Shown here piece after piece: positions 5,921 through 34,188 of a stretch of 34,188 nucleotides of DNA; the stretch's first letter is position 1, and the number at the start of each line of letters is the position of its first letter. Under the pieces are notes generated by a model. That model had not been told where the DNA came from, made no database searches, and saw only the letters and a list, made by a program, of their open reading frames with translations. A program made the position numbers and the translations under genes. The stretch comes from Macrostomum lignano (taxonomy: Eukaryota): contig NIVC01004822.1 of NCBI GenBank assembly GCA_002269645.1, positions 1 through 34,188 of the forward strand, written 5' to 3'.

Positions 5921-6103
5921 TAGGCCCATACATGCGCAACCTTGGGAATCACTTGGCCATTTCTATTAGCAACACATACATGTAAGTCACTATTGGCTGA
6001 AAGCAGTGACTACTATTCTGTCCAATAGCAACTTACATGTGTGTGTTGCCAATAGAAACGGCTGAGTGAATACCAAGGTTGCACCCAAGCATGCATAGGC
6101 CTA
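5921..6103. repeat. ~180-bp imperfect inverted repeat (foldback, MITE-like)
   Basis: Core arms 5956-5996 and 6022-6062 match at 36/41 positions (all differences are transitions); pairing extends with gaps to 5921/6103. Confidence 0.8.
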
Positions 6104-6922: not shown

Positions 6923-9900
6923 ATGAACCAATCGGCTAGTGAGGCGCATGCTCGCAGCGTTGAGCAGCAGCTGCTGGAGCAAATTAAACGATTCTTTAAA
7001 CTATTTGGTCTTGTAACCGGCGTCTGGCTTATTGGCTATCTGGGCTTCAGTGTCACCTGGCTGGTAGTTGCTGTGCTGGCTTACATCATCACCAGTTACA
7101 TTAAAGAGCAAAGGAAGGTGCGAACTAAGGCTTTCCAAGCATTGGCAAGGTAAGAAGTCTTAGAGGCTCTTGTGTACCAGATCCTCAGTTTCTGGGCCAG
7201 CCTCCCAGATCCTCAGTTTCTGGGCCAACCTCCCAGATCCTCAGTTGCTGGGCCAGCCTCTCAGATCCTCAGTTGGTGGGCCAGCCTCCCAGATCTTCAG
7301 TTGCTGGGCCAACCTCCCAGATCCTCAGTTGCTGGGCCAGCCTCTCAGATCCTCAGTTGCTGGGCCAACCTCCCAGATCCTCAGTTGCTGGGCCAGCCTC
7401 CCAGATCCTCAGTTGCTAGGCCAGCCTCCCAGATCCCCAGTTGCTGGGTCAGCCTCCCAGATCCTCAGTTGGTGGGCCAGCCTCCCAGATCTTCAGTTGC
7501 TGGGCCAACCTCCCAGATCCTCAGTTGCTGGGCCAGCCTCTCAGATCCTCAGTTGCTGGGCCAACCTCCCAGATCCTCAGTTGCTGGGCCAGCCTCTCAG
7601 ATCCTCAGTTGCTGGGCCAACCTCCCAGATCCTCAGTTGCTGGGCCAACCTCCCAGATCCTCAGTTGCTGGGCCAGCCTCCCAGATCCTCAGTCGTTGGG
7701 CCAGCCTCCCAGATTCTCAGTTGCTGGGTCAGCCTCCCAGATTCTCAGTTGCTGGGTCAGCCTCCCAGAGTGTCAGTTGCTGGGTCAGCCTCCCAGATCT
7801 TCAGTTGCTGGGCCAGCCTCCCAGATCTTCAGTTGCTGGGCCAGCCTCCCAGATCCCCAGTTGCTGGGCCACAAGCCTCCCAAAGTGTCAGTTGCTGGGC
7901 CAGCCTCCCAGAGTGTCAGTTGCTGGGCCAGCCTCCCAGATCCTCAGTTGCTGGGCCAGCCCCCCAGATCCTCAGTTGCTGGGCCAGCCTCCCAGAGTGT
8001 CAGTTGCTGGGCCAGCCTCCCAGATCCTCAGTTGCTGGGCCACAAGCCTCCCAAAGTGTCAGTTGCTGGGCCAGCCTCCCAGAGTGTCAGTTGCTGGGCC
8101 AGCCTCCCAGATCCTCAGTTGCTGGGCCAGCCCCTCCCAGATCCCCAGTTGCTGGGCCCCCTATCCATCACTTACGCGGGTGTTGATTTATGATGTAAAG
8201 AGTCCTTAAATAATGTTTTGTGTTGCTTTCTTCCCTCACCCAGAGACGAGCGCCAATTCCTGGCTAACGTGGAGAACCTGCCATCCTGGGTGTTCTTCCC
8301 GGATGTGGAGCGGGCCGAATGGCTGAACTCCATTATCAAGCAGGCCTGGCCATTCGTCAAGGATTACGCAGTGTCTATCATTGAGAAACAGATCATGCCC
8401 GGGGTTAGGGACAACCTGCCTGGGGTGATTCAGGACTTACGATTTTCTAGACTGGATCTGGGCGATATTGCGCCACGTTTTGGCGGAGTCAAGGTTAGTG
8501 TTGAATTATTTTAATAATTCATTAATAAAGTAATCCAATATTTATCATGGTTATCAAATCGTCGTCATTTTTAATCCCATATATTTTGATACCAACCTTA
8601 AATCCTATTATTCCAAGTCTACATGTATTGGCTGCCTCAAATCCCACTATTCCCAATACATTGCTTCAAATCCCCCATTATCCCAATCCACTGCCTTAAA
8701 TCTTATTATCCGTAGTCCACTGCTTCAAATCCATTATCCCTAATCCACTACCTTAAATCCCCCATTATCCTAATCCACTGCCTCAAATCCCCTATTTCCC
8801 CCAATCCACTGCCTCAAACCGCCCATTATCCTCAATCTACTGTCTCAAACCGCCCATTATCCTCAATCTACTGCCTCAAACCGCCCATTATCCTCAATCC
8901 ACTGCCTCAAACCGCCCATTATCCTCAATCTACTGCCTCAAATCCCCCATTATCCTCAATCTACTGCCTCAAACCGCCCATTATCCTCAATCTACTGCCT
9001 CAAACCGCCCATTATCCTCAATCTACTGCCTCAAATCCCCCATTATCCTCAATCTACTGCCTCAAACCGCCCATTATCCTCAATCAACTGCCTCAAATCC
9101 CCCATTATCCCCAATCCACTGCCTCAAATCCCCCATTATCCTCAAGTTACTGCCTCAAATCCCCCATTATCCCCAATCCACTGCCTCAAATCCCCTATTA
9201 TCCTCAATCTACTGCCTCAAATCCCCCATTATCCCCAATCCACTGCCTCAAATCCCCTATTATCCTCAATCTACTGCCTCAAATCCCCCATTATCCCCAA
9301 TCCACTGCCTCAAATCCCCCATTATCCCCAATCCACTGCCTCAAATCCCATTATCCCCAACCCACTGCCTCAAATCCCATTATCCCCAATCTAATCCTTA
9401 GAAATTGAATATCCCGTACTCAATAATGTGCTCTAATATCCCGGTGCCGCCTCAAACACATTAACCAGGTGTACACGGGCGACAACACTCGCCGTTCGGA
9501 AATAGTGATGGACATGGACTTAATCTACTATGGCGACGCTAAAATCGAAATGAAAACAAAAGGCATCAAAGCTGGCATCAAAAGTATCGAATTGCGCGGC
9601 ATTCTCCGTGTCGTAATCTCGCCACTGATCCCTCGGATACCTATCGCCGCCTGCGTCACAGTCACGTTTCTTTCCGTGCCGTATTTGAACTTTGACCTGA
9701 CCGATCTGGGAAACATACTGGACCTGCCAGGCTTGAGGCAGATGCTTGTCAAAGTGGTTTCCGATCAAATCTCTGCTCAGTTGGTTGTGCCTAATAGGCT
9801 GTTGGTTCCTTTGGCTGGCGATGTGGACCTGACCGCTATGAAGTGGATCCTGCCGCAGGGGGTTCTTCGGTTTAAGGTGAAATATTTCGTTTCAAATCTA

Positions 9901-12900
9901 CCTATATGCATCTGTTTGGGGATAATTTTCCCATGGATTTTAGTGTCAGAGTTTGGGATTATTATCCCATTGGATAATCCTATGTTTAGTTTCATTGGGA
10001 TTATTATCCCATCGGATAATCCTATGTATAGTTTTATGGGGATTATTATCCCATCGGATAATCCTATGTATAGTTTCATGGGGATTATTATCCCATTGGA
10101 TAATCCTATGTATAGTTTTATGGGGATTATTATCCCATTGGATAATCCTATGTATAGTTTCATGGGGATTATTATCCTATCGGTTAATACTATGTTGTGT
10201 AGTTTCATGGGGATTATTATCCCATCAGATAATCCTATGTATAGTTTCATGGGGATTATTATCCCATCGGATAATCCTATGTATAGTTTCATGGGGATTA
10301 TTATCCCATCGGTTATCCCACTCCCAGCTGGTTAATGCTCCACCACCCATATGCAATGCAGGTAGTGGAGGCTCGAGACCTCAAACGCAGCGACGTGGGC
10401 CTGATCAGGTCCGGCAAGTCCGATCCCTACGCCATAGTAACAGTCGGCTCGCAAAAGTACACAACCAAAGCGATTGCCAACTCGCTTAATCCCGTGTGGA
10501 ACGCCGCATTCGAGGCCGCAGTCGATGTGCGACAGGGTCAGCTATTGGATATTGAACTGTTCGACGAGGATGCCGGATCTAAGGACGATGAGTTGGGATC
10601 TGCTAAAGTCGATCTGGGCAGCGTTGCTAGGGAAGGCGTTCTAGATACCTGGCTGAAACTGGATGATGTGGACACTGGCTCGGTTAGGCTGCGGATGAGC
10701 TGGGCCAACCTGATGGACACGGCCTTGTTTCAGGTGGGCGCTGAGTCTGTTGAGATCGGTGTGGGAGGCTGGGATCAGGTTAAGGTGACTGGGATGTGAT
10801 GTAGGGAAGGGAGGCTGAGATGTGATGTAGAGAAGGGAGGCTGAGATGAGATGTAGAGAAGGGAGGCTGAGATGAGATGTAGAGAAGGGAGGCTGAGATG
10901 AGATGTTGGGAAGGGAGGCTGATATGAGATGTTGGGAAGGGAGGCTGATATGAGATGTTGGGAAGGGAGGCTGAGATGAGATGTAGGGAAGGGAGGCTGA
11001 GATGAGATGTAGGGAAGGGAGGCTGAGATGAGATGTTGGGAAGGGAGGCTGAGATGAGATGTAGGGAAGGGAGGCTGAGATGAAATGTAGGGAAGGGAGG
11101 CTGAGATAAGATGTTGGAAAGGGAGGCTGATATGAGATGTTGGGAAGGGAGGCTGATATGAGATGTAGGGAAGGGAGGCTGAGATAAGATGTAGGGAAGG
11201 GAGGCTGAGATGAGATGTAGGGAAGGGAGGCTGAGATGAGATGTTGGGAAGGGAGGCTGATATGAGATGTTGGGAAGAGAGGCTGAGATATATTGAGAGA
11301 AGACTAAGAAAAGATGTAGGGAGATCGGAACATAGAGTATAAAGAGATTAAGATCTTAAGGTCTTAAGGTTCAGTCTTGATAAATAGTCATGAACTCCTT
11401 TTAATAACCGGTTGCCAGGCGCCCAGCACACGAGGCAGCGGTGGCGGCGAGTTCAGCCGGGCCTTCCTGTACGTCGGCGTTGACTGCTGCCGCTCTCTGC
11501 CCACGGTGAAGTGCGGCCAGGAGCCTTCAGCTCTGGTAAGTACAGCTAATTCCCCTGACTGAGTCTGGCACAGGTGTGCTTATGTCATCGAACCACCCCC
11601 TGTTCCTATGTACATATAAGGGAATCCCACCACTAGGCGCTCGCAATGTACACATAGTTAATCCCACCCTCAACAATGTACACATGGAGAATCCCACCCT
11701 CCAAAATGTACACATGGGAATCCCACCCTCCAAAATGTACACATGGGGAATCCCAAATCCCACGCTCCACAGTTTATACATGGGGAATCCCACTCCCCAA
11801 AATTTACACATTGGGAATCCCACCCTCCGCAATGTACACATGGGAAATCTCGCCCTCTAATGTACTGATTGGGAATCTCACCTCCAACCTACACAAAATA
11901 ACACGTATTGTCTCGCATATTAGCAAACTATAAGTTTAATTATCAAGCCCTATTAAATACACTACGAAGGCCAGAGAGTGGACAGCCTAATTTGTTGATC
12001 CCCTAATCTATAAATAATTGCTGCTAAAACCTCCAGGTGGAAATTAGCGTGACGGGCGGAGGCGGGGGCAGTGGCAGCAGCTCAACCGACGCGCAGCGCA
12101 CCGCCACTTTTGAGGACTCGCCAAATCCGATATTCGAAGCGCCGTTTCATTTTTTTGTATCCGAGCCTTCTATTGCAAGCGTACAGCTGACCGTTCTGCA
12201 CAGAGGTCGGCGGCGCCTTGGGCAGGTGCAAATACCGCTGCGCTTCCTGCTGCAGGAGGCCAACATGCAGCTGCATAGGGCCTGGGATCTCAATACTGAC
12301 AGTGGGACGCAGTCTCAGGTGAGAAGATAGTGCTCTATCTTTAGTGCAGTTTTTTATGCCCTATTTATGCCGTTTTTTAATTTGAGTAGTGCCATTTTGT
12401 GTCTGAGTAGTGCCATTTTGTGTCTGAGTAGTGCCATTTTGTGTCTGAGTAGTGCCATTTTGTGTCTGAGTAGTGCCATTTTGTATCTGAGTAGTGCCAT
12501 TTTGTGTCTGAGTAGTGCCATTTTGTGTCTGAGTAGTGCCATTTTGTGTCTGAGTAGTGCCGTTTTGTGTCTGAGTAGTGCCATTTTTATTTAAATAGTA
12601 CCATTTTGAGTCTGAGTAGTGCCATTTTTATTTAAATAGTACCATTTTGAGTCTGAGTAGTGCCATTTTTATTTAAATAGTACCATTTTGAGTCTGAGTA
12701 GTGCCATTGTGCGACCTGAATAGTGCCATTTTTAGTCTGAGTAGTGCCATTGTGTGACCTAAATAGTGCCATTTTGAGTCTGAGTAGTGCCATTGTGTGT
12801 CCTGAATAGTGCCATTTTGAGTCTGAGTAGTGCCATTGTGTGTCCTGAATAGTGCCATTTTGAGTCTGAGTAGTGCCATTGTGTGTCCTGAATAGTGCCA

Positions 12901-14671
12901 TTTTGAGTCTGAGTAGTGCCATTGTGTGTCCTGAATAGTGCCATTTTGAGTCTGAGTAGTGCCATTTTGTGTCTGAGTAGTGCCATTTTGTGTCTGAGTA
13001 GTGCCATTTTGTGTCTGAGTAGTGCCATTTTGTGTCTGAGTAGTGCCATTTTGTGTCTGAGTAGTGCCATTTTGTGTCTGAGTAGTGCCATTTTGTGTCT
13101 AAGTAGTGCCATTTTGTGCCTTAGTGGTGGTTCCATTTTGTGTCTGAGTAGTGCCATTTGTATTTAAATAGTACCATTTTGAGTCTGAGTAGTGCCATTT
13201 TTATTTAAATAGTACCATTTTGAGTCTGAGTAGTGCCATTTTTATTTAAATAGTACCATTTTGAGTCTGAGTAGTGCCATTGTGTGTCCTGAATAGTGCC
13301 ATTTTGAGTCTGAGTAGTGCCATTGTGTGTCCTAAATAGTGCCCATTTTGAGTCTGAGTAGTGCCATTGTGTGTCCTGAATAGTGCCCATTTTGAGTCTG
13401 AGTAGTGCCATTTTGTGTCTGAGTAGTGCCATTTTGTGTCTGAGTAGTGCCATTTTGTGTCTGAGTAGTGCCATTTTGAGTCTGAGTAGTGCCATTGTGT
13501 GTCCTGAATAGTGCCATTTTGAGTCTGAGTAGTGCCATTGTGTGTCCTGAATAGTGCCATTTTGAGTCTGAGTAGTGCCGTTTTGTGTCTGAGTAGTGCC
13601 ATTTTGAGTCTGAGTAGTGCCATTGTGTGTCCTGAATAGTGCCATTTTGAGTCTGAGTAGTGCCATTGTGTGTCCTGAATAGTGCCATTTTGAGTCTGAG
13701 TAGTGCAATTGTGTGTCCTGAATAGTGCCATTTTGAGTCTGAGTAGTGCCATTGTGTCCTAAATAGTGCCCATTTTGAGTCTGAGTAGTGCCATTGTGAG
13801 TCTGAGTAGTGCCATTGTGTGTCCTGAATAGTGCCATTTTAAGTCTGAGTAGTGCCATTTGTATTGAAAAGTGCCATTGTCATTCTGTTTACTTCATGTC
13901 AGAATGCTTCCATTCCGAATCCTCCAGAAACGTTTTTTGCCTATGAAAATTAGCTCATTTTTTTATAAATCTTCATATAAAAATCACCCCCACCCCCAGA
14001 TCGTCCTGTTCCTGGCCCTTCGCGCCATTGTTGAAGGCCAATACGAAGCTCCAGCCGAAATTCCCGTTAAAACGATACCTGCAGCTGAGGCAGCCGAACC
14101 AGCTCAGGCTGAAGCTCAAGATGAACCCGAGGCCGCTAATACAATTTCAACCAACTCGGACAGCGATGGTGTCCGGCAGCGAAAGAATGCACCCGCCGCC
14201 GCACCCGCCGCCGCACCCGCCGCCGCAACCGCCGCCGCACCATCTCAGCAGGGCAGAGTGCAGCTTACCATCCGCTACAGCCAGCCGCGCCAATGCCTTG
14301 TAGTGGTGTGCCACCAAGCCGACTTGCCCATAGCAACCGTTGCTACGGACGACTCGAGCTTGGATCCGTACGCTAAGCTCTACATCAAATCCGACAGTCG
14401 AGGCGCTGTGTCTTCAAAGAAGCAGAAGACTAAGACGATGAAAGCTACTAGGAACCCAGTTTATGACGAGTCTTTCGAATTCTCCCTGCCAGAGTCCGAC
14501 TTATCCAGCAGCTCGCTCTGCGTGGCTTTGATGAAGCAGTGCGGCAAACTGATTGGCGGCAAGAACCATCAGATTGGCTTGGCCAGCATTGCACTGGCAG
14601 ATTTGGAGCAGAATGCCGCTACTGTTTGGTACGATTTGAAGACGGCTGCTGGGATGGCTGGCGACGAGTGA
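6923..14671 (+). CDS. ESYT: extended synaptotagmin (TM hairpin-SMP-C2A-C2B-C2C), 775 aa, 7 exons: 6923-7149, 8244-8493, 9469-9876, 10362-10733, 11419-11535, 12037-12318, 14000-14671
   Basis: N-terminal hydrophobic segment; LPSWVFFPDVERAEWLN SMP signature; GVLRFKVVEARDL, KSDPYA and NSLNPVWN C2 motifs; all junctions are GT-AG and phase-compatible (2328 nt total). Confidence 0.95.
7177..8158. repeat. 28-bp minisatellite (GTTGCTGGGCCAGCCTCCCAGATCCTCA)n, ESYT intron 1
   Basis: Visible tandem array; source of ORFs 7170-8209. Confidence 0.95.
8630..9395. repeat. ~31-bp minisatellite (CTGCCTCAAATCCCCCATTATCCTCAATCTA)n, ESYT intron 2
   Basis: Visible tandem array. Confidence 0.93.
9918..10320. repeat. 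42-bp minisatellite (GGGATTATTATCCCATCGGATAATCCTATGTATAGTTTCATG)n, ESYT intron 3
   Basis: Visible tandem array with internal dyad (GGATTAT..ATAATCC); in frame with exon 3 but removed by the AAG|GTGAAA donor at 9877. Confidence 0.93.
10792..11290. repeat. 26-bp purine-rich minisatellite (ATGTAGGGAAGGGAGGCTGAGATGAG)n, ESYT intron 4
   Basis: Visible tandem array. Confidence 0.93.
11605..11900. repeat. degenerate ~30-bp minisatellite (ATGTACACATGGGAATCCCACCCTCCAAA)n, ESYT intron 5
   Basis: Visible tandem array. Confidence 0.85.
12378..13880. repeat. 21-bp minisatellite (TGAGTAGTGCCATTTTGTGTC)n with ~43-bp dimeric higher-order variant, ESYT intron 6
   Basis: Visible tandem array; source of the MALLRHK ORFs. 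Confidence 0.95.
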
Positions 14672-15800: not shown

Positions 15801-16671
15801 TTTGGGGGATTTGAGATTTGATCTATGTCTTTTAATCCTATTTCTATCTAAGTTTGTCTCTCTTATTTATCAAAACAGATTATTAAACATTGAATCAGTT
15901 TCCATTAGTGTAAATGAAGCCATTATTTGCCAATTTCTATCATTTTTTTATTATTGACGTTTTTATATGTTCTGTGCTTTGTTTTTCATGCTGATGACAA
16001 TAGAGATTTATGTATCCATTTCTGTCTAAACTACCGTACAAACAGCTAATATATTTTAACTATTTATTTTTATTTTTTCAAGTCGAGTTTCGTTTCGTAA
16101 AGAAGATCATCAGTGGCTTTAATTGCTGTTATTCGTAGCCAAATTTTATTTTTAAAACCAGTTTTTAAAAATTATATTCTACTTTTTGTTCCTCCTATCC
16201 ATCTGCAGCTTACCTTGCCTTGAAAGTTTAATAATTGATTTTTCTATTTTATCTATCTTTGTACAATTTGATATAGTTGTGTACTCAAGTTATTTTGTTT
16301 TGGTGTGCCGAATTTCTATATCAATATTGCTGGCCAAATAAGTTCAATCAGACAGACTGCTCTCCAGCTGTTTCTGTTCCCTTTTTGTATCTCCTTTTTA
16401 TTGTTACTTTTTCTAGTAGTCTTTTTTCTAAATTTAGACTGGCTTCTATTAGCTTCTGCTGGCACTGCTTTTTGCTGCTGTCTTTTGTGTGAAGCAATTT
16501 TACTCTCTCTCGCTAATGAGCACTGTAGTTCACTGTGAACTATTCAATTTAATTGGGTCAGCGTGTTGCCTTGGCTTTTTTATTCTATTGGCATTCGAGT
16601 ACTGCTTGTTGGCTTTGTTGCTTATTGACTTTTTAGCTGGCTGGATAAGATTGAATAAGTGCTATAGGGAT

Positions 16672-17082
16672 GTCTGTCTATGTCTGTCTCAGTGTGTCTC
16701 AGTGTCTGTCTCAGTGTCTGTCTCCGTGTCTGTCTCAGTGTCTGTCTCAGTGTGTCTCAGTGTCTGTCTCAGTGTCTGTCTCAGTGTGTGTCTCCGTGTC
16801 TGTCTCAGTGTCTGTCTCAGTGTCTGTCTCAGTGTGTCTCAGTGTGTCTCAGTGTCTGTCTCAGTGTCTGTCTCAGTGTCTGACTCAGTGTCTGTCTCAG
16901 TGTCTGTCTCAGTGTCTGTCTCAGTGTGTCTCAGTGTCTGTCTCAGTGTCTGTCTCAGTGTCTGACTCAGTGTCTGTCTCAGTGTCTGTCTCAGTGTCTG
17001 TCTCCGTGTCTGACTCAGTGTCTGTCTCCGTGTCTGTCTCAGTGTCTGTCTCAGTGTCTGTCTCCGTGTCTGTCTGTCTGCC

Positions 17083-17121
<39 letters not shown>

Positions 17122-17123
17122 TA

Positions 17124-17154
<31 letters not shown>

Positions 17155-17160
17155 GTCTCT
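16672..17160. repeat. (CTGTCTCAGTGT)n 12-bp repeat and (CTGT)n microsatellite
   Basis: Visible tandem array. Confidence 0.93.
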
Positions 17161-17273
17161 CAGAATTCTAATGTCCTGAAGTCCAAATAGTGTATAGAAT
17201 GCTCACTTGTCATCTGAATTTTTTATCTCTAGATCTACTAGTACTAAAAAATTAACTCTCTGATTGCTTCCAG

Positions 17274-17765: not shown

Positions 17766-17884
17766 CAGCGTGTACTTTTAATTGGCTTTTGAAGTAAACG
17801 GTTTTTTAACATGATTTCAAAAATTAAAGTTGTGCAATAAATTATTCTGCAATCAGTTCATTAATTAATCAATCAGTTACTTTT

Positions 17885-18440
17885 TGGCGCCTCCCCCACC
17901 CCATATTTGGCGCCTCTCACACCCCCATATTTGGCGCCTCTCACATCCCTATTTTTGGTGCCTCTCACACCCCCTTTTTGGTGCCTCTCAATCCCCCTAT
18001 TCGGCGCCTCTCACACCCCTTATTTGGCGCCTCTCACACCCCCATATTTGGCGCCTCACACCCCCATATTTGGCGCCTCTCACACCCCCATATTTGGCGC
18101 CTCTCACACCCCTCTATTCGGCGCCTCTCACACCCCTCTATTCGGCGCCTCTCACACCCCTCTATTCGGCGCCTCTCACACCCCTCTATTCGGCACCTCT
18201 CATTCCCTATTTGGCGCCTCTCACACCCCTCTATTTGGCGCCTCTCACACCCCTCTATTCGGCGCCTCTCATTCTCTATTTGGCGCCTCTCACACCCCTC
18301 TATTCGGCGCCTCTCACCCCTCTATTCGGCGCCTCTCACACCCCTCTATTCGGCGCCTCTCACACCCCTCTATTCGGCGCCTCTCACACCCCTATATTCG
18401 GCGCCTCTCATTCCCTATTTGGCGCCTCCCATGGCCTTTT
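17885..18440. repeat. 24-bp minisatellite (TTCGGCGCCTCTCACACCCCTCTA)n
   Basis: Visible tandem array. Confidence 0.93.
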
Positions 18441-18811
18441 TGGCGCTTCTCACACCTTCTCACACCTTTTTGTTGGCTCTAAAATCCATTCGATTCCCTA
18501 GTAGCGGAGTTCCTCTTCATCACTACTTCGCAAACTTCTTCAGGTGCTGTGATTTTAATAATAAATCAATTTTTTAAGTTTATTTTAGTGAGTATTTTAC
18601 GGTATGTGCTGCGAAATACAAACTTTACTAGTCTGCAGAGATCTTTGTTTTGCAATATATGATCCAACAAATAAATGCTTTTGTCTTACTATTCAACAGT
18701 ACTAAAGTTCGAGTTAGTTTGAGTTCTTTAAAAATAATTGGCTGTTTTATAAGTAACTCGTATGTAATTACTCAAGATTTTTGCAGAATTTTGACACTCG
18801 TAGCTACTCGT

Positions 18812-19275: not shown

Positions 19276-22200
19276 ATGGACGTCAGGCAGCTCAGGCAGT
19301 TGGAATTTCCCCAACTAAACGATTATGTCTATCTGGATCATGCAGGCGCCACTCTCTATTCGGAGAGGCAGCTGACCAGGGTGATGCAGGAGCTGCAGTC
19401 GGGGTTATATGGCAATCCGCATACTCAGGTAACGTCTGTTTAACTTGGCTCTTGGATTTACTCTCTCTCCGTCTTTCCTTTCTTTACACTGTCTTCCTGC
19501 ATGTTTGTCTCCCATCATTCATCCCTTCATCTCCTCTATCCCTCCCTTCATCTCCCCTATCCCTCGCTCCATCTCCTATATTCCTCCCTTCATATCCTCT
19601 ATCCCTCCCTTCATCTCCTCTATTCCTCCCTTCATCTCCTCTATCCCTCCCTTCATATCCTCTATCCCTCCCTTCATCTCCTCTATTCCTCCCTTCATCT
19701 CCTCTATCCCTCCCTTCATATCCTCTATCCCTCCCTTCATCTCCTATATCCCTCCCTTCATCTCCTATATCCCTCCCTTCACCTCCTCTATTCCTCCCTT
19801 CATCTCCTCTAGGCTCTATCCCTCCCTTCATACCTCCTATCCCTCCTATCCCATATCTGTCTCCTCTCCCTCCCTGCATCTCGCCAGGCCCGCAAAAGTG
19901 CTCACACCAGTCGCCTAGTTGAGGAGGCTCGCAACTCTGTGCTGAAACATTTCAACACCAGCAACCAGCAGCATGCTGTCATTTTCACATCCGGCGCCAC
20001 GGCTGCAGTGAAAATTTTAGCCGAGAGTTTCCAAGCAGGCCAGCACGGCGCTGGTTTGTTTAATTATTTATTAGACTCGCACACCTCTATTGTTGGCATG
20101 CGGGAAGTGCTCCGGTCCAGAGGATTCGTTGTGAGGTGCAGCAGGACTGAGCTGGAGCTGGAATCAGCTACTAGCAGTAGTAGTGACGGTCGCGTTCTGT
20201 TTGCCCTGCCTGCTCAGTGCAATTTCTCCGGCAGGAAACTGGATTTAAGCATTGTGGACCGATTGAAAGCCAATAATAAAGACGCGTACGTGCTGCTGGA
20301 TGCTGCATCATTTGCCGCCACCTGTCCATTGGATCTGACAGCTTGTTCGGCTGATTTTGTCTGCTTATCGTTTTATAAAATGTTTGGCTACCCTACGGGC
20401 CTCGGAGCTCTCATTGTGCGGCTGGATAGAGTGGCCAATGGTGAATCGGTGCTTAAGAAGGCCTACTTTGGCGGTGGTACCGTGCAGGTGAAGCAAAATT
20501 GTTTTTACTTTTCTGCACTTGTTTATCATCAGTGAATCTCTTATGATGAAACATAAATAGCTAATTGAGGTTATTAGGCACTGCTATTAACTGCTTTTAG
20601 CAACTGGCCCTCAAGAGACCCACATGAATCGTCCGCAAAAATCGCCCTCAAAAATCGCCCTTAAGAATCGCCCCCAATAATCGCCCGCAAGAATCGCCCT
20701 GAAGAATCGCTCGCCTTTAAGAATCGCCCCCAAGAATCGCCCTCAAGAATCGCCCTCAAGAATCGCCCTCAAGAGTCGCCCTCAAGAATCGCCCACAAGA
20801 ATCGCCCTCAAGAATCGCCCGCAAGAATCGCCCACAAGAATCGCCCTCAAGAGTCGCCCTCAAGAATCGCCCTCAAGAATCGCCCTCAAGAATCGCCCTC
20901 AAGAATCGCCCCCAAGAATTGCCCTCAAGAATCGCCCTCAAGAATCGTCCCCAAAAATCGCCCTTAAAAATCGCCCTCAAGAATCGCCCTCAAGAATCAC
21001 CCACAAGAATCGCCCTCAAGAATTGCCCTCAAGAATCGTCCCCAAAAATCCCCCTTAAGAATCGCCCCCAATAATCGCCCTTAAGAATCGTCCCCAATAA
21101 TCGCCCTCAAGAATCGCCCTTAAGAATCGTCCCCAAAAATCGCCCTTAAGAATCGTCCCCAAAAATCGCCCTTAAGAATCGTCCCCAATAATCGCCCTCA
21201 AGAATCGCCCTAAAGAATCGCCTTTAAGAATCGCCCTCAAGAATCGTCCCCAAAAATCGCCCTTAAGAATCGCACCCAATAATCGCCCCTAAGAATCGCC
21301 TTTAAGAATCGCTTTTATTGAATATTAATCGCTTCCTTCCCCCTATAATCACCCACAAGAATCGCCCTGAATCGCCCCATAGAATCGCCTTTAAGTATCG
21401 ATTTTATAAATCGCCCTCAAGAATCGCCAAAAATGTTAGACCTACAAAGAAAGACTCTCTGAAATCGGTGGCAGGCGATGGTCCCATCCGGCTCGTTCGT
21501 CCAGCAGTCGCCGGACCTTGCCGCCGGTTTCGAAGACGGCACCATAAACTATCTGAGCATCCTAGCAGTGCGTCACGGCTTATGGGCTCTCGAACAGCTT
21601 GGCGGCGGGATGCAGCAGATCAGTCAGCGAGTCTTTCGCCTGGCCCAGTACTTGGCCCGGCGTTTAAGCGAGCTGCGCCACTCTGACGGCTCCCCTGTTT
21701 GCCTGCTGTACACCGATAATGACTATACGGACTGGACTAAGCAGGGCGGCATTGTGGCTTTCAATTTAGTGCGCTGCGATGGTAGCTTTGTTGGCTATTC
21801 GGATCTGAGCTCCAGGGCTGAAAACTATCGGATACAGGTGCGATTATTGCTGTTACTTTTAAGTCAGGTCAGTCAGTCAGTCAGTCAGTCAGTCAGTCAG
21901 TCAGTCAGTCAGTCAGTCAGTCAGTCAGTCAGTCAGTCAGTCAGTCAGTCAGTCAGTCAGTCAGTCAGTCAGTCAGTCAGTCAGTCAGTCAGTCAGTCAG
22001 TCAGTCAGTCAGTCAGTCAGTCAGTCAGTCAGTCAGTCAGTCAGTCAGTCAGTCAGTCAGTCAGTCAGTCAGTCAGTCAGTCAGTCAGTCAGTCAGTCAG
22101 TCAGTCAGTCAGCCACCCTGACCCCTATAAAATGGCCCTTCCCCACCCCAACCCTACTCGCCAAAGCTCCGAGTGGGCTGCTTCTGCAACGTGGGCGCCT

Positions 22201-23472
22201 GCCAGCGCTACCTGGACATCACGGACGAACAGCTGTTGGCTAATCTTCGCGCCGGCCACGTGTGCGGCGACGGTGTCGATCTAGTCGACGGCCGACCTAC
22301 CGGCGCTGTCCGAGCCTCATTTGGCTACATGTCGGACGAATCCGACGCCGACGCTCTGGTTGCTATGGTAACGGACAATTTTGTAATAACAAAACCTATG
22401 CCGGTATTTTCGGTTGCGGCGCGTCGGCGCCTTTGATGTCAATGTCCCGAGACGAGCTGGCCAACCTGTGCCGCGGCGGCCAATCAGCAGCGTCAAAGGC
22501 GGCCGCGGAGTCGCACTGGCCCCATTTGGGCCGCATATTTCTCTATCCTGTGAAATCTTGCGCCGCCTTTGAAGTTGCCGCTAGTTGGCCCGTAGATCGG
22601 CGCGGCTTTCATCTTGACCGGCACTGGATGGTTGTAAACGAGTCCGGCTTGTGTCTGACTATGAAACGGGAGCCGCGGCTTAGTCAGGTGATTTATGACG
22701 ATTTTTGTTGCTGTCGTTAATTCTCTTTGTTTAGCCAATTAACCACACACTAGCTAGCCTCCTTATGTGCCTAAGAATCGCCCCTTGACCACCCCATTAT
22801 AAAACCGCCACTCCACCACCCCAATATAACCCCCTTCTCAACTACCCCATTATAAAACCGCCACTCCACCACCCCAATATAACCCCCTTCTCAACTACCC
22901 CATTATAAAATCGCCCCTCAACCACTATAAAATCGCCCCTCAACCACTATAAAATCGCCCCTCAGCCACTGTAAAATCGCCCCTCAACCACTATAAAATC
23001 GCCCCTCAACCACTATAAAATCGCCCCTCAGCCACTATAAAATCGCCCCTCAACCCCCATTATAAATCGCCCCTCAGCCACTATAAAATTGCCCCTCAAC
23101 CATGCTAAAATTGCCCCTTAAACTAGTATAAAATCGCCACTCAACCATTTCAAAGATGGTCGCCAACCCGGATATCAATGGTGCACCCTATTCCTCGTTA
23201 CTCTAGATCCGACCCTTCCTGGACCTTCAACGCCGGCTGCTGATTCTGAACTCGCCCATCAGCGATCAAAATGCGGTTGTCCCAATGGACGCCGGGCACC
23301 AGACTGCCGCTCTCTGCCTGCACAGCCGCGTCTGCGGCAGTCGCGTCCGCCTGCTGGACTGCGGGCAGGCCGCGGCCGACTGGCTCCACAGCGTTGTTGG
23401 GTATCCGTGCCGGCTGGTGCGGCAGGACGGCGACCGGCTGGCCAAGACTGGGGAGCAGGTAAGTGTCCGCTG

Positions 23473-25369: not shown

Positions 25370-28300
25370 ATGCAGCAAAACTCCAGCCAAGAATGCTACA
25401 ACTGTCCTGCTGCCAGCATAGCAACAGATCTATTCGTATGCGGCCTATGCTCAGTTAGCTTTCACGAGCTGGGCCAGTTTCTGGCGCACAGGAATTCCAA
25501 CTGCTTGGCCGCGACCGGCAATGCCGGCTGCAACTACGCGGCCGCGTCATCGACCACTGCTGGCAGGTTTCTGACTCACCTGCAGCAGGTTGAGCCGCCG
25601 CCTAACCATCAGTCCCCAGCCGCCTGCCTGAGCCAGGGCTACAGTGCTCCGCCAACTGCCGTTGTTGTTGCCACGGATGACTTTGTTGGCCAGCAGAGTC
25701 TGCCGTTTTTACCTGCCGATGCTGGTCCAACGGTGAGGAAGTACTTGATGTACTGTTTTCTTTTTAGGAAGTGTTGGGAACAACTAGCAACCGATTAGAA
25801 AGTTTCATCACTTGACTCCACACCAACCAAATAATTAATTTGAATACCGCCCGGAGTCGAACCAGTCCTTCTGCTTATCAGAGCGGCGTTATTGGCCACT
25901 AATTGGACCTCCCCTAAGTTTAAATCGAATCAAATTGACATATATATAAGCTGTTGAAGCCCGCGACTTTTGAAGTCATACTGAAACAAAAACGTGTTAA
26001 TAGTTTGCATTGAAGTTTGAAAAATTTGAGTAAATTCTTGTTAAATTAGGATTTGAGGCAAGCATTGATCTCATCGGCTGGGGTGCTGCGCAGAATGAGT
26101 CTGTTTAAACAATGTGTGGGCAAACTCTGGTCTCTGCCTCTTTCTCCGTCCTGATCTGGTTCTTTGAAACTTATCTCCTCTCTCCTCTTTCCTCTCTCCT
26201 TTCTTTTCTCATCCCATATATCATCTCCTCTCTCCTCTCTTATCCCTTTTCTTTTTTATTTCATCTCTCCTGTCTTATCTCCTCTCTCTTCTCTCTTCTC
26301 TCTGCTCGCTTATCTCTACTCTCTCCTCTCTTCCCTCCCCTTTTCTCTCTTCTCTCTTCTCACTGTTACTCTCTCTTCTCGTATATATATATTTTATTAC
26401 ACCTGCCCTAATGGCCGCAGCCTTTGCTGTTCAGTCCAAGCACTGGGGGGTCGCCACACACAGCCTCAATTGCCCCAGCTAATGCTGGTGCCCATTTTAC
26501 AGCTGGGTGAACTGAAGCAATGCAGAGTTAAGTGTCTTGCTCAAGGACACAAATTGTTCCAGTCCAGTATTGGATTCAAGAATCGAACCCCCGACCTCCT
26601 TGCCAGCAGTCCGACACTCTAACCACTAGGCTACAACCCCCATTTACATATTGAACCATTGCCAATCATTTTAAAGGCCTATTCAAACGGCATGGCGGAT
26701 CCAACTGCAAGTCACCAGCAGCAGCACCAGCCTCAGTCAACTGTCACAGTGCCCAATTGCGGCTACTTTGATCCTGCAGCTTTGACACCTGCCAACAATC
26801 AGCACGTGCATCAGCAGGTGCCTCATCAGAACCCGATGGTTCAACAAATGCAATCAGAGGATGAGCAGCATCAGTCAGCTTTGCCATTAACTGCTCTTCT
26901 CTCTGAGGCATCAGTGGTCATTGATAGTACAGGTGCTTCATCAGTTGCAGTACCAGACTCTGCAGCCTCCAATTGCTTTCATCATCCACCTGTCAATCAG
27001 CAGCAGCAATATGAAGATTGCACTCATCAGCAGTATTCTAACAGCTACGCAGATCCTTATAATCTGCAGCAGCAGCAGCAGCAGAATTATGAGTTGTACG
27101 CGGCCAATACTACTTGTCAGCAGCATCAGCAGTATCAGCATGATCAGTCGCAAATGTTTGCAGAAAATCACGCGGTCAATTCTTATTATAGTTATCAGCA
27201 GCAAGCGGCAGTGGGTCATCAAGGTCATCAGGGTCATCAAGGTCATCAGGGTCATCAAGGTCATCAAGGTCATCAAGGTCATCAGGGTCATCAAGGTCAT
27301 CAGGGTCATCAAGGTCATCAGGGTCATCAGGGTCATCAAGGTAATCAGGATCATCAAGGTCATCAAGGTCATCAGGGTCATCAAGGTCATCAGGATCACC
27401 AGGGTCATCAAGGTCATCAGGGTCATCAGTCGTCTTTTATCCAGCAACCGCAGCCAGCACCTGCTGCAATGATGTCGGAACAAGTTTTAGCACCTTCTTC
27501 TTCGTTAGCCAGTGCTAACAGACAATCGCGAACAGGCGGCGAACAAAGAAACGATAATCAACGCTCCAAAGTGACGTTGCTACGTTCAACTGACAGGCCG
27601 CAGATGTTTCCTTGCACAGTGTGCAACTTTGTGTGCAAATATCAGAATCAGCTGACCCTGCACATGAGAAAGCATACGGGTTGACTTACTTGACTTAGCT
27701 GCAGGGCGGTCCGAAGACGCAGCGGGGAGGCGAGCGTCGCCCATTCCGCTAATCCCTGAAAGACCCGCATAGGCTAGGGCGCGGGGCCGGTCAGGGAGGT
27801 CTGCCGGTCCTGTCTGCAGCGTTGTCTTCGGTGGGGAAGACGGAGGCTCGCTTGGTGGCCCGGAGGAACCGGATGAGCCGTGGGATGTTCTCGGGCCGGC
27901 AAACGTCGTCCAGGGACGGGTTGGGCCCGAGGTGGTTGAGCCGGTCTCGGTTGAAGGCCGGGCAGTAGCAGACGAAGTGCATGGCATCTTCATTCTCGAG
28001 GCTGCAGAAGGGGCAGAGTTCACTCCGGCGAACACATCGGAGGAAGCAGTGCCTGGCAAAGCAACCGTGACCTGTGAAGGTCATAGTGAGAGCGCGGATA
28101 TCTTTTCGATTTTGATTCAAAAGGATTCTCCGCAGCTTGAGGGACGGATTGGGCACTGCCGCACGAGATTGGCGGCAGTTGGAGATACCATCCCATCTGC
28201 GCAAGTGCAGGATGTCCGCCCAGTCGTTAATCTGACGATTAATGACTGTGGCGGGGATGGGGGCCAGGGGCACGGGGCCAAGGGGCGAGCCGGAACAGCC

Positions 28301-31300: not shown

Positions 31301-34188
31301 CCCTCCCGGGTACCAGCGGTTAAACACTGGTAGCCGGTGGGGACATGTTGGGGGCTGCCCCTAAGCGTCCAAGGTTCCTGGATAAGGATAATCCCTGGCA
31401 CGTATTGGTCAGTGTGCTTCAAGAGGTTGACTGAAGCAGCAATGCTGTGCTGCAGGTTGACCTGCAAGCAGTGGATGCCCTGGGAGACAGTCATGTCTAC
31501 TGTCCAGGGGAGGAGAAAAGCAACTCATTCTCAGCCTCATCGGTGAGAGTTGAGTCGCCAATTTCCATTGGCTCAGGCTCAGCCGCCTCCCCAGCCGCCG
31601 CGGAGGCGGACACGGCGCCCACGGCAGGTGAGTCACCTAGCCGCGCTACACCGCCCTCCTCCCCAGCGACTGGGGTACGGCTGCTGCCTTCGCCTTGCGC
31701 CCCGCCGTCGGGAGTCTGAGCTCGGCCGGCAGCGTCCTCCTGGTGGTAATCCCACCAGTTGGAAGGCTGAGCCGTGCCGTCGTCCAGTTCCCTCGGCTGG
31801 CTTTCAGTGTTTTTTCGAGCGGCACGAGTCTGCTCGAGGTGAAGTCTCAGAGACTGAGCTTCGTCAAGTGCGCGCTGGATTAGACCGGACCGCCGGCTAC
31901 TGCGGGCGGGTCTACGTCCGCGCGAGGCGGACTCAGCAGCGCGAATAGCCTTGTTAGGCTCGGGATCGGGTTGCTGCTGCCGCTTGGCCGGCGGGGCATG
32001 AGCCCCAGCTCCGGGAGCGGCGCGCTTCCCGTCTTTCTTGGTCTCCACCTTGCCCTCCTCACAGCGGAGGATGGTCAGTTGATGGAGACCAAGGTGGAGG
32101 TTTGTGCCGTGCGGTAGCCGCTTGGCCCATCCCTCCGTCAGGCCGAGGATGACTGTGGCCCCGGTCGTGCCCTTGCGGACCGTGCTGTGGTACACAAGAC
32201 CACTGGCGTCGAGATCCGGGTGCCGCTTGAGCAGGAGCTGCCGCAGCTGCTCCCCGGACTTGATTGCACTGTCGGCCGGGACCCAAATCCGATGGCGGAT
32301 GGTCTTCGGCCGCTCGCTCTCCAAGGCGAAGGTCAGCTGGCCCAGGTCGCTGTGCCAGTCGAACTTGGGCAGCTGATCCCGCAGGAGCTGGGTGCTCTCC
32401 TCGGATTTGCACCACAGTAGGATGCACCCGTTCGCCTTGGTGGACTTGACGATGTCCACGAAGACGCCCTCCAGGGTTAGATTGAGCAAGCCCTCGTCGA
32501 TGGTACGCCACGCGACGTCGAGCTGCTCGGGCGTCAGGTCGAAATCCCCGCCGAGGATCATCACGGCGGGTTGCAGCGGCTGCTTGACCTTGGACGCGTA
32601 GGACTCGGAGGTCTTGAGCGGGGCCGCTTTGTCTTTGGAAGGCGGTAGGCCGGCAGGGTTGCCCCCCTGAGAGCCCGAGGACACGGCGGTTCCTGACGGC
32701 CCAGCCGCGCCACCGGACTCCCCAGAGGGCCTCCCCGCTGCGGTGGCTCCCGAAGGCCTCACCGCGGCTTGCGTGCCCTCCTCAGACGCAGCAGCAGCCC
32801 GCTTCTCCTGCCGCTTACGGTTGCGGCGGATGTTCCGCTGTCGTCGAGACTCGGCCGTGCGCGGTCGGCTAGACTGGCGGCCAGGGTGATCGGCGGCAGC
32901 GTCAGCTGGCCCGGTTGGACCAGGTTGGGCGTTGGTGCTACCAGTGGTAGCTACCGGAGCGGCTGATCCCGGTGAGCCAGAGGCGACCGGGTCAGTTTCT
33001 TTAGGGATGGTGGCGTTAGTGGCCATAGCTGAAAAGCGGGGAGGGCTACTCGTTATGCGAGTTGAGTACCCGACTGGCCGACACCTCAAGCCAGCCGGTT
33101 TGAAAAAAGGACCGCTAGCGACCGGACTACTCCCCGGCCTTCCAGCCCATCGGCACGGTCAAACACCTTAGGCATTAGAGGGTACGTTAAGCAGTACCAC
33201 GGCCTGCAGGCTGGTGAGCCAGACCCGCATACCCAAATTCGGCCGAAGCCACTGGATAGGGTCGCCAGCGCCGGAGCCCAGTCTGTCCAGCAGCCCTAGG
33301 GTCTGCCTTGAACACACGCGGGGACGAGTACCCCTGGGTCGACTTGCGAGACAGCGTGGGGGAGTCTGCGGCTGCCAGAGGCAAATAGAGGGTGCAGACC
33401 TCCCACCAGCCTTGACCTGCTGAAGATGGGGGCAGGCGTGAAGCATCGCAGACCTTAGCTCGTAGGCCTAGTCTGTCTCATACTTCACTGGCATGCTGAA
33501 TACGCCTTCGCGTGCAGCATACGGGTTAGTTTTGCCATTATACTACTCGATTTTTTGTTTATAAGTAGCGTAGTATCTGGTATGAATAACATGATTTTCG
33601 ATACATATCGGCCAAAGAACACTTGTAGAGAATTCTTAAGATAGTTTATTTTCCAAAAAATCCGGTATATTTTTTATATTATTTTCGATACATATCGGGT
33701 GTTAATTTTCATTTAATAGTTTAGTTTGGTTTATGAAATTATTTTTAGTAAAAAACATAAGATTGCTAAATTTGCTGTTCACACTACTTGATAACTTGTC
33801 CTTGTAAGTAGTTTAGTTTGAATATATGTTTTATAAATATGTATCGAATATATGCTTTTCGATACATATCGGCTATTTATTGCTATCAACCTTTATTGTC
33901 CGCAGGCGAGAAGCCATTCCAATGCGCTATTTGCGGTCGGTCTTTCTCATTGAAGCACAACGTTCGCAAGCACATGAACTCGCACAGGATCTGGCCCGCA
34001 GCGACACAGCGCCCCCGCCTGCTGCTACATCTTCATCTCCAGCTCCCGCTGAGGCTGCTGCACCGAATTCGGCATCTGCTGGTCAGCCTTCGACTGTTGT
34101 CGACACCGCGTCGGGTGTCGAGGCAGCAACCGGTCAATCGTCGTTGCTATGGCAACAGAGTCGACTCGCCAAGTGTTCCAGCCGACGC
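25370..34188 (+). CDS. ZNF341: ZNF341-like C2H2 zinc-finger gene (partial); exons 25370-25732, 26677-27679, 33906 to window end; intron 2 interrupted by the LINE
   Basis: N-terminal [26 protein letters not shown] finger. The spliced join gives HMRKHTG|[30 protein letters not shown], matching from memory human ZNF341 [33 protein letters not shown]. Splice phases 0 and 1 are compatible. Confidence 0.8.
26393..26640 (-). mobile_element. tRNA-derived CORE-type SINE, copy 2 (ZNF341 intron 1)
   Basis: A box (fwd 26623-26633), B box (fwd 26580-26589), CORE-like segment; aligns by eye with 18812-19129. Confidence 0.85.
27214..27429 (+). repeat. coding 9-bp repeat (GGTCATCAR)x24 = (GHQ)24 in ZNF341 exon 2
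   Basis: 216 nt, in frame, 24 tripeptide units (variants GNQ, DHQ). Confidence 0.95.
27791..31494 (-). CDS. LINE ORF2 pol (APE endonuclease, reverse transcriptase, RNase H, C-terminal CCHC), ~1234 aa, split by one 1-nt deletion at ~30588-30590
   Basis: APE: [32 protein letters not shown]: [18 protein letters not shown]. RNase H: [38 protein letters not shown]8-H-X4-C. Adding one C (GCCCATGG to GCCCCATGG) restores the typical PWWN motif and joins ORFs 30487-31494 and 27791-30361. Confidence 0.93.
31497..33026 (-). CDS. LINE ORF1 (gag-like, 509 aa from ATG 33026; central DUF4780-like region)
   Basis: Long ORF immediately upstream of ORF2, with a basic N-terminal stretch, SYASKVK, and [20 protein letters not shown] resembling LOA-clade ORF1 (recognised by eye); no CCHC knuckle seen. 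Confidence 0.85.
   Translation of the reverse strand: MATNATIPKETDPVASGSPGSAAPVATTGSTNAQPGPTGPADAAADHPGRQSSRPRTAESRRQRNIRRNRKRQEKRAAAASEEGTQAAVRPSGATAAGRPSGESGGAAGPSGTAVSSGSQGGNPAGLPPSKDKAAPLKTSESYASKVKQPLQPAVMILGGDFDLTPEQLDVAWRTIDEGLLNLTLEGVFVDIVKSTKANGCILLWCKSEESTQLLRDQLPKFDWHSDLGQLTFALESERPKTIRHRIWVPADSAIKSGEQLRQLLLKRHPDLDASGLVYHSTVRKGTTGATVILGLTEGWAKRLPHGTNLHLGLHQLTILRCEEGKVETKKDGKRAAPGAGAHAPPAKRQQQPDPEPNKAIRAAESASRGRRPARSSRRSGLIQRALDEAQSLRLHLEQTRAARKNTESQPRELDDGTAQPSNWWDYHQEDAAGRAQTPDGGAQGEGSSRTPVAGEEGGVARLGDSPAVGAVSASAAAGEAAEPEPMEIGDSTLTDEAENELLFSSPGQ
33277..33515 (-). ncRNA. HDV-like (delta-like) self-cleaving ribozyme forming the exact 5' end of the LINE
   Basis: P1 GCACGCG (33515-33509)/CGCGUGU (33320-33314) with G1.U wobble; P2 CCCAG (33338-33334)/CUGGG (33281-33277); P3 GGG/CCC; L3 UACUCGU; P1.1 AC/GU; P4 GGCAG..CUGCU; J4/2 C-A-G-A (catalytic C at 33285). 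Predicted cleavage site coincides with the TSD boundary. Confidence 0.88.

Follow-up and report, generated by a model that had tools for sequence, protein, structure and literature searches.

The use of self-cleaving ribozymes by long interspersed elements (LINEs), which are retrotransposons without long terminal repeats (non-LTR retrotransposons), was published as a mechanism in 2010–2013. Ribozymes with a hepatitis delta virus (HDV)-like fold are established at the 5′ ends of R2, R4/Dong, RTE, L1Tc and Baggins (PMC3774820, PMC3185411, PMC6765202), and in R4, Dong, Baggins, L1Tc and RTE cleavage has been reported at the element's 5′ end (PMC3774820). In R2 ribozymes the two strands of helix P1 are separated by anything from 23 to more than 700 nt, P1 has 6–7 bp and little is conserved besides the catalytic C; J1/2 loops of 216–498 nt have been described in silkmoths, and a planarian R2 ribozyme has been predicted before (PMC3774820). 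Activation by structured J1/2 domains has been described for large HDV-like ribozymes (PMC4908430). Here we analyze a 34,188-nt stretch of Macrostomum lignano DNA (contig NIVC01004822.1, positions 1 to 34,188 of the forward strand; hereafter referred to as the window). Judging from its sequence, we consider it likely that positions 33515–33277 of the minus strand encode a large HDV-like self-cleaving ribozyme that would head a LINE's RNA as its first 239 nt. A previous reading of the same DNA, hereafter the original prediction, had placed an HDV-like fold right at the 5′ terminus of a non-LTR retrotransposon; this placement is backed by the insertion boundary and by compensatory changes in related elements, and the literature precedent that it gave for such ribozymes at LINE 5′ ends is correct (PMC3774820, PMC6765202).

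The region contains a complete HDV-like nested double pseudoknot of 239 nt in which ribozyme nucleotide n corresponds to window position 33516 − n (positions in the ribozyme and in the element refer to the minus strand throughout). Read along the strand, the parts follow in the order P1, P2, P3, L3, P3′, P1′, P1.1, P4, J4/2 and P2′, which is that of HDV-like ribozymes, and each helix is found where the original prediction had put it. The 5′ strand of P1, GCACGCG (33515–33509, nt 1–7), begins with G33515, or G1, and cleavage is predicted 5′ of this nucleotide. The 3′ strand is CGCGTGT (33320–33314, nt 196–202). Together they form 7 bp, in agreement with the 6–7 bp of HDV-like ribozymes; the first pair is G1·U202 (U33314), G·U being usual here in such ribozymes, and the remaining six are Watson–Crick pairs. 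A 170-nt J1/2 insert, a peripheral domain, follows at 33508–33339 (nt 8–177). The 5-bp P2 is formed by CCCAG (33338–33334, nt 178–182) and CTGGG (33281–33277, nt 235–239), the latter being the 3′ end of the ribozyme. In the 3-bp P3, GGG (33333–33331, nt 183–185) pairs with CCC (33323–33321, nt 193–195); the enclosed 7-nt L3, TACTCGT (33330–33324, nt 186–192), has U in its first position and G in its sixth. Positions 2–3 of L3 (AC, nt 187–188) make the 2-bp P1.1 with GT at 33313–33312 (nt 203–204). The joiner TCAA (33311–33308, nt 205–208) leads from P1.1 to the P4 hairpin, GGCAGACC cta GGGCTGCT (33307–33289, nt 209–227), with seven of eight pairs formed. J4/2, GGACAGA (33288–33282, nt 228–234), carries the candidate catalytic C at C33285 (C231), followed by AGA.

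The ends of the insertion can be read from the host DNA. The 12-bp sequence AACCCGTATGCT (minus strand) has only two matches in the window, at 33516–33527 and at 27671–27682, with 0 expected by chance; these are the target-site duplication at the 5′ and 3′ ends of the element, respectively. The 5′ junction is unambiguous, because the 3′ copy of the duplication is followed by T whereas the element opens with G; at the 3′ end, the two A's adjoining the element could instead be its tail. Excision of the insert in silico yields a plus-strand host exon ending ...HMRKHT-G|GTTAGT, an AT-rich intron and then cag|GC-EKPFQC, so that the empty site rebuilds the canonical C2H2 H-T-G-E-K-P-F linker of a zinc-finger gene as well as an exact exon/intron junction. 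Since the duplication and the restored splice site and linker fix the boundaries, G33515 is the first inserted base, which bears out the original prediction that G1 is the first base inside the duplication. The predicted ribozyme thus occupies the extreme 5′ end of the element, whose first nucleotide coincides with the cleavage site predicted for it.

Two related elements with 5′ regions, out of matches that also included P0003 (60% identical), were used to ask how the pairings are conserved. The first, L002 (a Logan contig, run ERR14788467), has both open reading frames (ORFs) intact; its ORF2, one continuous frame of 1232 aa, is 64% identical to that of the window element. The second, L001, is a JGI metagenome contig with an ORF1 that is 47% identical, and is truncated about 90 nt into the 5′ untranslated region (UTR). 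The P1 5′ strand is visible in L002 only. In the 5′ UTR alignment, the first base of the L002 contig is the exact homologue of G33515 (GCCTGCAATGG versus GCACGCGAAGG). Covariation was counted for the 18 pairs of P1, P2, P3 and P1.1 on the three-sequence alignment, and sliding the 3′ partners by 1–3 columns served as a control. For the proposed pairs, 95.6% of cells are paired, compared with 24–54% in the slid controls. Both sides have changed in six of the 18 pairs, two each in P1, P1.1 and P2. Between the window and L002, pair 3 of P1 changes from A-U to C-G and pair 4 from C-G to U-A; because the strands of P1 are about 190 nt apart, this co-change is hard to explain otherwise. In P1.1 both pairs are compensated (AC with GT in the window, CT with AG in L002). 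P2 reads CCCAG/CTGGG in the window, CTCAGA/TCTGAG in L002 and CCCAAA/TTTGGG in L001. A GGG/CCC P3 and a 7-nt L3 are present in all three elements, with P3 invariant and L3 varying (TTCTCGT in L001, TCTCCGT in L002); the joiner between P1.1 and P4 is GCAA in L002 and TAAA in L001. P4 is perfect in L001, with eight of eight pairs (GGCAGACC act GGTCTGCC), and in L002 it is a 10-bp hairpin of unrelated sequence (GCGCCCGGCC atct GGCCGGGCGT). In each of the three sequences the J4/2 C, for which a catalytic role is putative, precedes the P2 3′ strand by four nucleotides. We conclude that this DNA encodes an HDV-like fold maintained through compensatory changes, and that the integrated copy begins at the cut site predicted for that fold.

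The fold is also recovered by an independent descriptor. For P3 it required 3 bp, for L3 U1, C3 and G6, for P1′ 7 nt with a final U and for P2 5 bp; P1.1, a stem at P4, C-N-R-A and, at most 300 nt upstream, a partner for P1 were required as well. Applied to both strands of the whole window, it returned exactly one locus, with G1 at 33515 on the minus strand. Chance rates were obtained from dinucleotide shuffles with G·U permitted in P1. A shuffled window gave 0.45 core-only matches and about 0.1 full matches, and a shuffled 6-kb element strand gave 0.006 full matches. The descriptor is, therefore, not very specific and the motif by itself is not overwhelming; what decides the matter, and lifts it well above chance, is two independent facts: G1 falls exactly on the boundary of the insertion, and the helices covary. 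The chance of finding a core near the 5′ end with a P1 partner that is exactly the first 7 nt is estimated from the shuffle counts at about 2e-6.

Several observations weigh against a ribozyme at this position. The check with HDV-like covariance models suggested in the original prediction was run as an Rfam search of the window, and neither the HDV-like models nor those of any other ribozyme family, twister included, gave a match at the gathering score or even at E ≤ 10; on all related loci retrieved, Rfam at E ≤ 1 likewise detected no ribozyme family. The Rfam miss is weak evidence, since neither the pseudoknot nor the 170-nt insert can be handled by covariance models. By minimum free energy, the 246-nt region has no advantage in stability over shuffles (z = −0.49), a comparison that is uninformative for a pseudoknot. 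The relatives number only two, and the P1 5′ strand is visible in just one of them. That relative, L002, has G-C rather than G·U as its first pair and a P1 of 6 bp, while L001 has U·U at one P1.1 pair, which leaves 1 bp; in the window copy, P4 contains one A·G mismatch. The C-N-R-A of J4/2, which the original prediction had included, is present in the window copy, but the purine-A after the candidate catalytic C is missing in both relatives (CGUG and CUGC). Finally, the window copy may itself be inactive, since it lies antisense to the gene that hosts it and its ORF2 carries a frameshift.

These points have to be weighed together with other explanations of the same data. Silence of Rfam and a permissive descriptor, with its 0.45 core and about 0.1 full matches per shuffled window, would be compatible with a chance HDV-like pattern in a G+C-rich 5′ UTR. 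Such a match would not be expected to start P1 at the exact boundary of the insert, to show six compensatory pairs with 95.6% of cells paired (no more than 54% in slid controls), or to keep a P4 hairpin in L002 despite unrelated sequence, and we regard it as highly improbable. Another explanation invokes an internal RNA polymerase II promoter that sets the 5′ end by starting at +1, which is known from certain other LINEs, the fold being a non-cleaving structure of the 5′ UTR involved in protein binding or translation initiation. A +1 start at G1 would equally put G1 beside the duplication and open the L002 contig there, and the sequence conservation of J1/2 and of downstream UTR blocks is as expected for protein-binding or promoter elements. 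On the other hand, a promoter needs no co-variation of the first 6–7 nt with a segment 190 nt downstream, nor of both P1.1 pairs, and the J4/2 C and the L3 U and G keep a fixed spacing, as in catalytically active relatives; a promoter without cleavage is in our opinion unlikely, if less so than chance. In L1Tc one 77-nt stretch is both promoter and ribozyme (PMC3383444), and HDV-like ribozymes have been proposed to help translation (PMC6765202), so promoter, translation and ribozyme roles are not mutually exclusive. The promoter independence put forward in the original prediction is one possibility among these.

The ribozyme could also be real but use a proximal P1 just upstream of P2 and cut inside the 5′ UTR. 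In L001, GCTCGC at 76–81, about 14 nt before P2, pairs over 6 bp with GCGAGC, the P1 3′ strand, and the window has a 5-bp proximal alternative (CACGC at 33358–33354). The homologous segment, however, forms only 3–5 bp in the window and L002, with uncompensated changes, and co-variation is confined to the distal P1. Moreover, all three DNA copies keep sequence upstream of the proximal site, and their templates were thus not cut there. We give this arrangement very little credence; the GCTCGC of L001 may be left over from an earlier cleavage site in the proximal position, or it may compete as an alternative pairing.

With a distal P1 and a ribozyme that cuts 5′ of G1, the following course of events can be proposed. 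A source copy would be transcribed, possibly inside a longer read-through transcript, and the RNA would adopt the nested double pseudoknot, with P1 stacked on P1.1 and P4, with P2 stacked on P3, and with the structured 170-nt J1/2 domain keeping P1 and P2 together. The J4/2 cytosine C33285 would catalyse scission 5′ of G1, which would free the element RNA from any upstream transcript and leave it starting at G1 with a 5′-OH. Target-primed reverse transcription would then copy the element RNA to its very end. A copy with G1 directly beside the target-site duplication, as in the window, is the expected product of cleavage followed by end-to-end reverse transcription.

The sequence of J1/2 is partly conserved between the window and L002, for example in GTATGAGA...GCTAAGGTCT.CGATGC. 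RNAalifold applied to J1/2 of these two sequences only predicted 41 pairs, eight of them with changes on both sides, and this model is suggestive of a multi-helix structured domain. By eye, a short helix could close J1/2 beside P1 and P2, with GCG at nt 11–13 pairing with the CGC that precedes a conserved AAG; its counterpart in L002 would be GCAG/CTGC. We tentatively suggest, as a joint proposal that we hold to be possible rather than probable, that J1/2 is a functional module (a protein-recognition site, an internal promoter or a translation element) within a composite 239-nt 5′ end, and that HDV-like ribozymes are also ancestral to a broad LINE lineage with apurinic/apyrimidinic endonuclease (APE), reverse transcriptase (RT), RNase H and a DUF4780-like ORF1. 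The flatworm element of the window and related elements in metagenomic assemblies may be members of that lineage.

The whole element is a 5.8-kb non-LTR retrotransposon flanked by the target-site duplication and extending from 33515 to about 27683. The 5′ UTR that remains downstream of the ribozyme (33276–33027) contains blocks common to L001 and L002, such as GGCTTCGGCC and CCGGGGAGTAGTCCGG; the conserved blocks at 33276–33090 include small hairpins, of which these two are examples. ORF1 occupies 33026–31497, with the ATG at 33026 verified. Zinc knuckles are absent from it; in its core it is weakly similar to an ORF1 annotated as DUF4780, that of another related locus, L045. ORF2 (31494–27791) encodes APE, RT and RNase H, and the Pfam domains found in the element are Exo_endo_phos_2, RVT_1 and RNase_H. 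In the window copy ORF2 has one frameshift, located between 30592 and 30667, between the endonuclease and RT parts, which reflects either a decayed copy or a sequencing error. The last part of the 3′ UTR (27790–27683) is a tail in which TAAGTCAA(G) occurs twice (27683–27700); one copy is found in L002 (at about 5950–5963). The tail is a short tandem repeat, not poly(A). The best named matches of ORF2 are Macrostomum lignano proteins, at no more than 75% identity, which fits the probable flatworm origin given in the original prediction; identity with insect and metagenome elements is 35–38%. Further copies of the element were not found within the window.

The LINE lies antisense in a Gln/His-rich C2H2 zinc-finger gene (27604–27682 and 33516–33985, plus strand), exactly on its 5′ splice site. 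The duplication spans the last nine exon bases and GTT, and the exon now runs into GTTGAC. The original GTTAGT donor is now 5.8 kb from the exon, and splicing of this allele may be affected. The host intron contains three exact copies (33597–33611, 33684–33698 and 33858–33872, plus strand; 0 expected) of a near-palindromic 15-mer, TTCGATACATATCGG, which may be a small repeat or a remnant of the kind left by miniature inverted-repeat transposable elements. Elsewhere in the window, ORF translations reveal many long tracts of tandem or low-complexity repeats, both between and within host genes (7170–8210, 9950–10490, 13205–13860, 16600–17180, 17880–18580, 19500–19920, 21800–22000 and 26900–27480). 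The host sequences include C2-domain exons at 10335–10799 and 13871–14671 and a molybdenum-cofactor-sulfurase-like gene with Aminotran_5 and MOSC_N domains at 19939–22720.

Further relatives were sought by pattern and by protein similarity. The core DNA pattern GCAAGNCGNCNCN{2,3}GGGTNNNCGTN{0,1}CCCGC had 0 matches in viral contigs and matched two metagenome contigs and two bacterial or archaeal genome contigs. The two metagenome matches have no blastn similarity to the element; the two genome matches are contigs of Actinomycetota metagenome-assembled genomes (MAGs) and were taken as chance by the pattern alone, their similarity being unchecked. The UTR 16-mer CCGGGGAGTAKTCCGG had 38 matches in viral contigs, none of them blastn-similar to the element. 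A search with full-length ORF1 yielded one homologue, an alignment search of public collections with the conserved core of ORF1 yielded none, and an ORF2-based search for loci in viral contigs returned nothing.

Among more distant loci, the HDV-like fold was not recognised in the 5′ regions of L046, L047 and L048 (RT identity 34–35% and 32%) or in L050 and L051 (RT identity 44%), and L049 is without a 5′ UTR. In L045 (RT identity 37%), whose contig is catalogued with a bacterial MAG, a candidate HDV-like core is present at 1–198, with P3 AAA/TTT, L3 CTCTCGG, P1′ CCGAAAT and P1.1 GA; the contig opens with the candidate 7-nt P1 partner, GTTTCGG. This core is known from a single sequence and has no clear P2 or J4/2. 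L050 (72–150) and L051 (80–160), both JGI elements, have in common a 5′ end that begins near GGGG, and also a 7-bp helix that is conserved through a compensatory change (CTGCATG/CATGCAG versus CTGCACG/CGTGTAG) and followed by GGGCAAAG. We could fit this arrangement neither to the HDV-like fold nor to any Rfam ribozyme.

The locus leaves the known picture of ribozyme use by LINEs unchanged. Through it, the known ribozyme-terminated retrotransposons are joined by an element with two ORFs and RNase H, and a precise mechanism of 5′-end processing can be proposed for a LINE family in a Macrostomum-like flatworm. None of the papers searched links HDV-like ribozymes to Macrostomum or to flatworm LINEs other than R2. 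As a natural large HDV-like ribozyme with a conserved, predicted multi-helix J1/2, it should be helpful in studying how peripheral domains tune such ribozymes. For genome annotation, ribozymes of this type are missed by Rfam models and can be recovered by combining a descriptor with target-site duplication boundaries and covariation.

Compared with the R2 ribozymes of Drosophila, silkmoths and many other animals, the predicted ribozyme has the same nested double pseudoknot in the 5′ UTR, with a P1 of 6–7 bp, a 3-bp P3 and a J4/2 C (putatively catalytic here), a very large J1/2 and variable sequences of P4 and J4/2 (PMC3774820). R2 itself has a single ORF and a restriction-like endonuclease, inserts only into 28S rDNA and is co-transcribed by RNA polymerase I, whereas the window element has two ORFs with APE and RNase H and lies in a protein-coding gene. 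The R2 ribozyme often cleaves 9–36 nt upstream, within 28S sequence, while the window element is predicted to cut at its own first base. In silkmoth R2 the J1/2 domain is required, and in Drosophila R2 it can be dispensed with. Baggins has the same APE–RT–RNase H architecture as the window element. A predicted cut at the LINE's precise 5′ end is shared with Baggins1 (LOA clade), RTE, R4/Dong and L1Tc (PMC3774820, PMC6765202, PMC3185411); compared by description rather than by sequence, the ribozymes of these elements are mostly compact (77 nt in L1Tc), in contrast to the 170-nt J1/2 found here. The ribozyme drz-Agam-2, from a mosquito, likewise has a structured J1/2 domain, proposed to pinch P1 and P2 together (PMC4908430); there it is a single helix, P1.2, and in the window a predicted multi-helix domain of 170 nt. 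In Schistosoma mansoni, another flatworm, LINEs carry a self-cleaving ribozyme, as predicted here, but one of a different class, a twister variant used in retrotransposition (PMC8501958). Set beside these systems, the window element is a well-supported further example of a known LINE mechanism and introduces no new principle.

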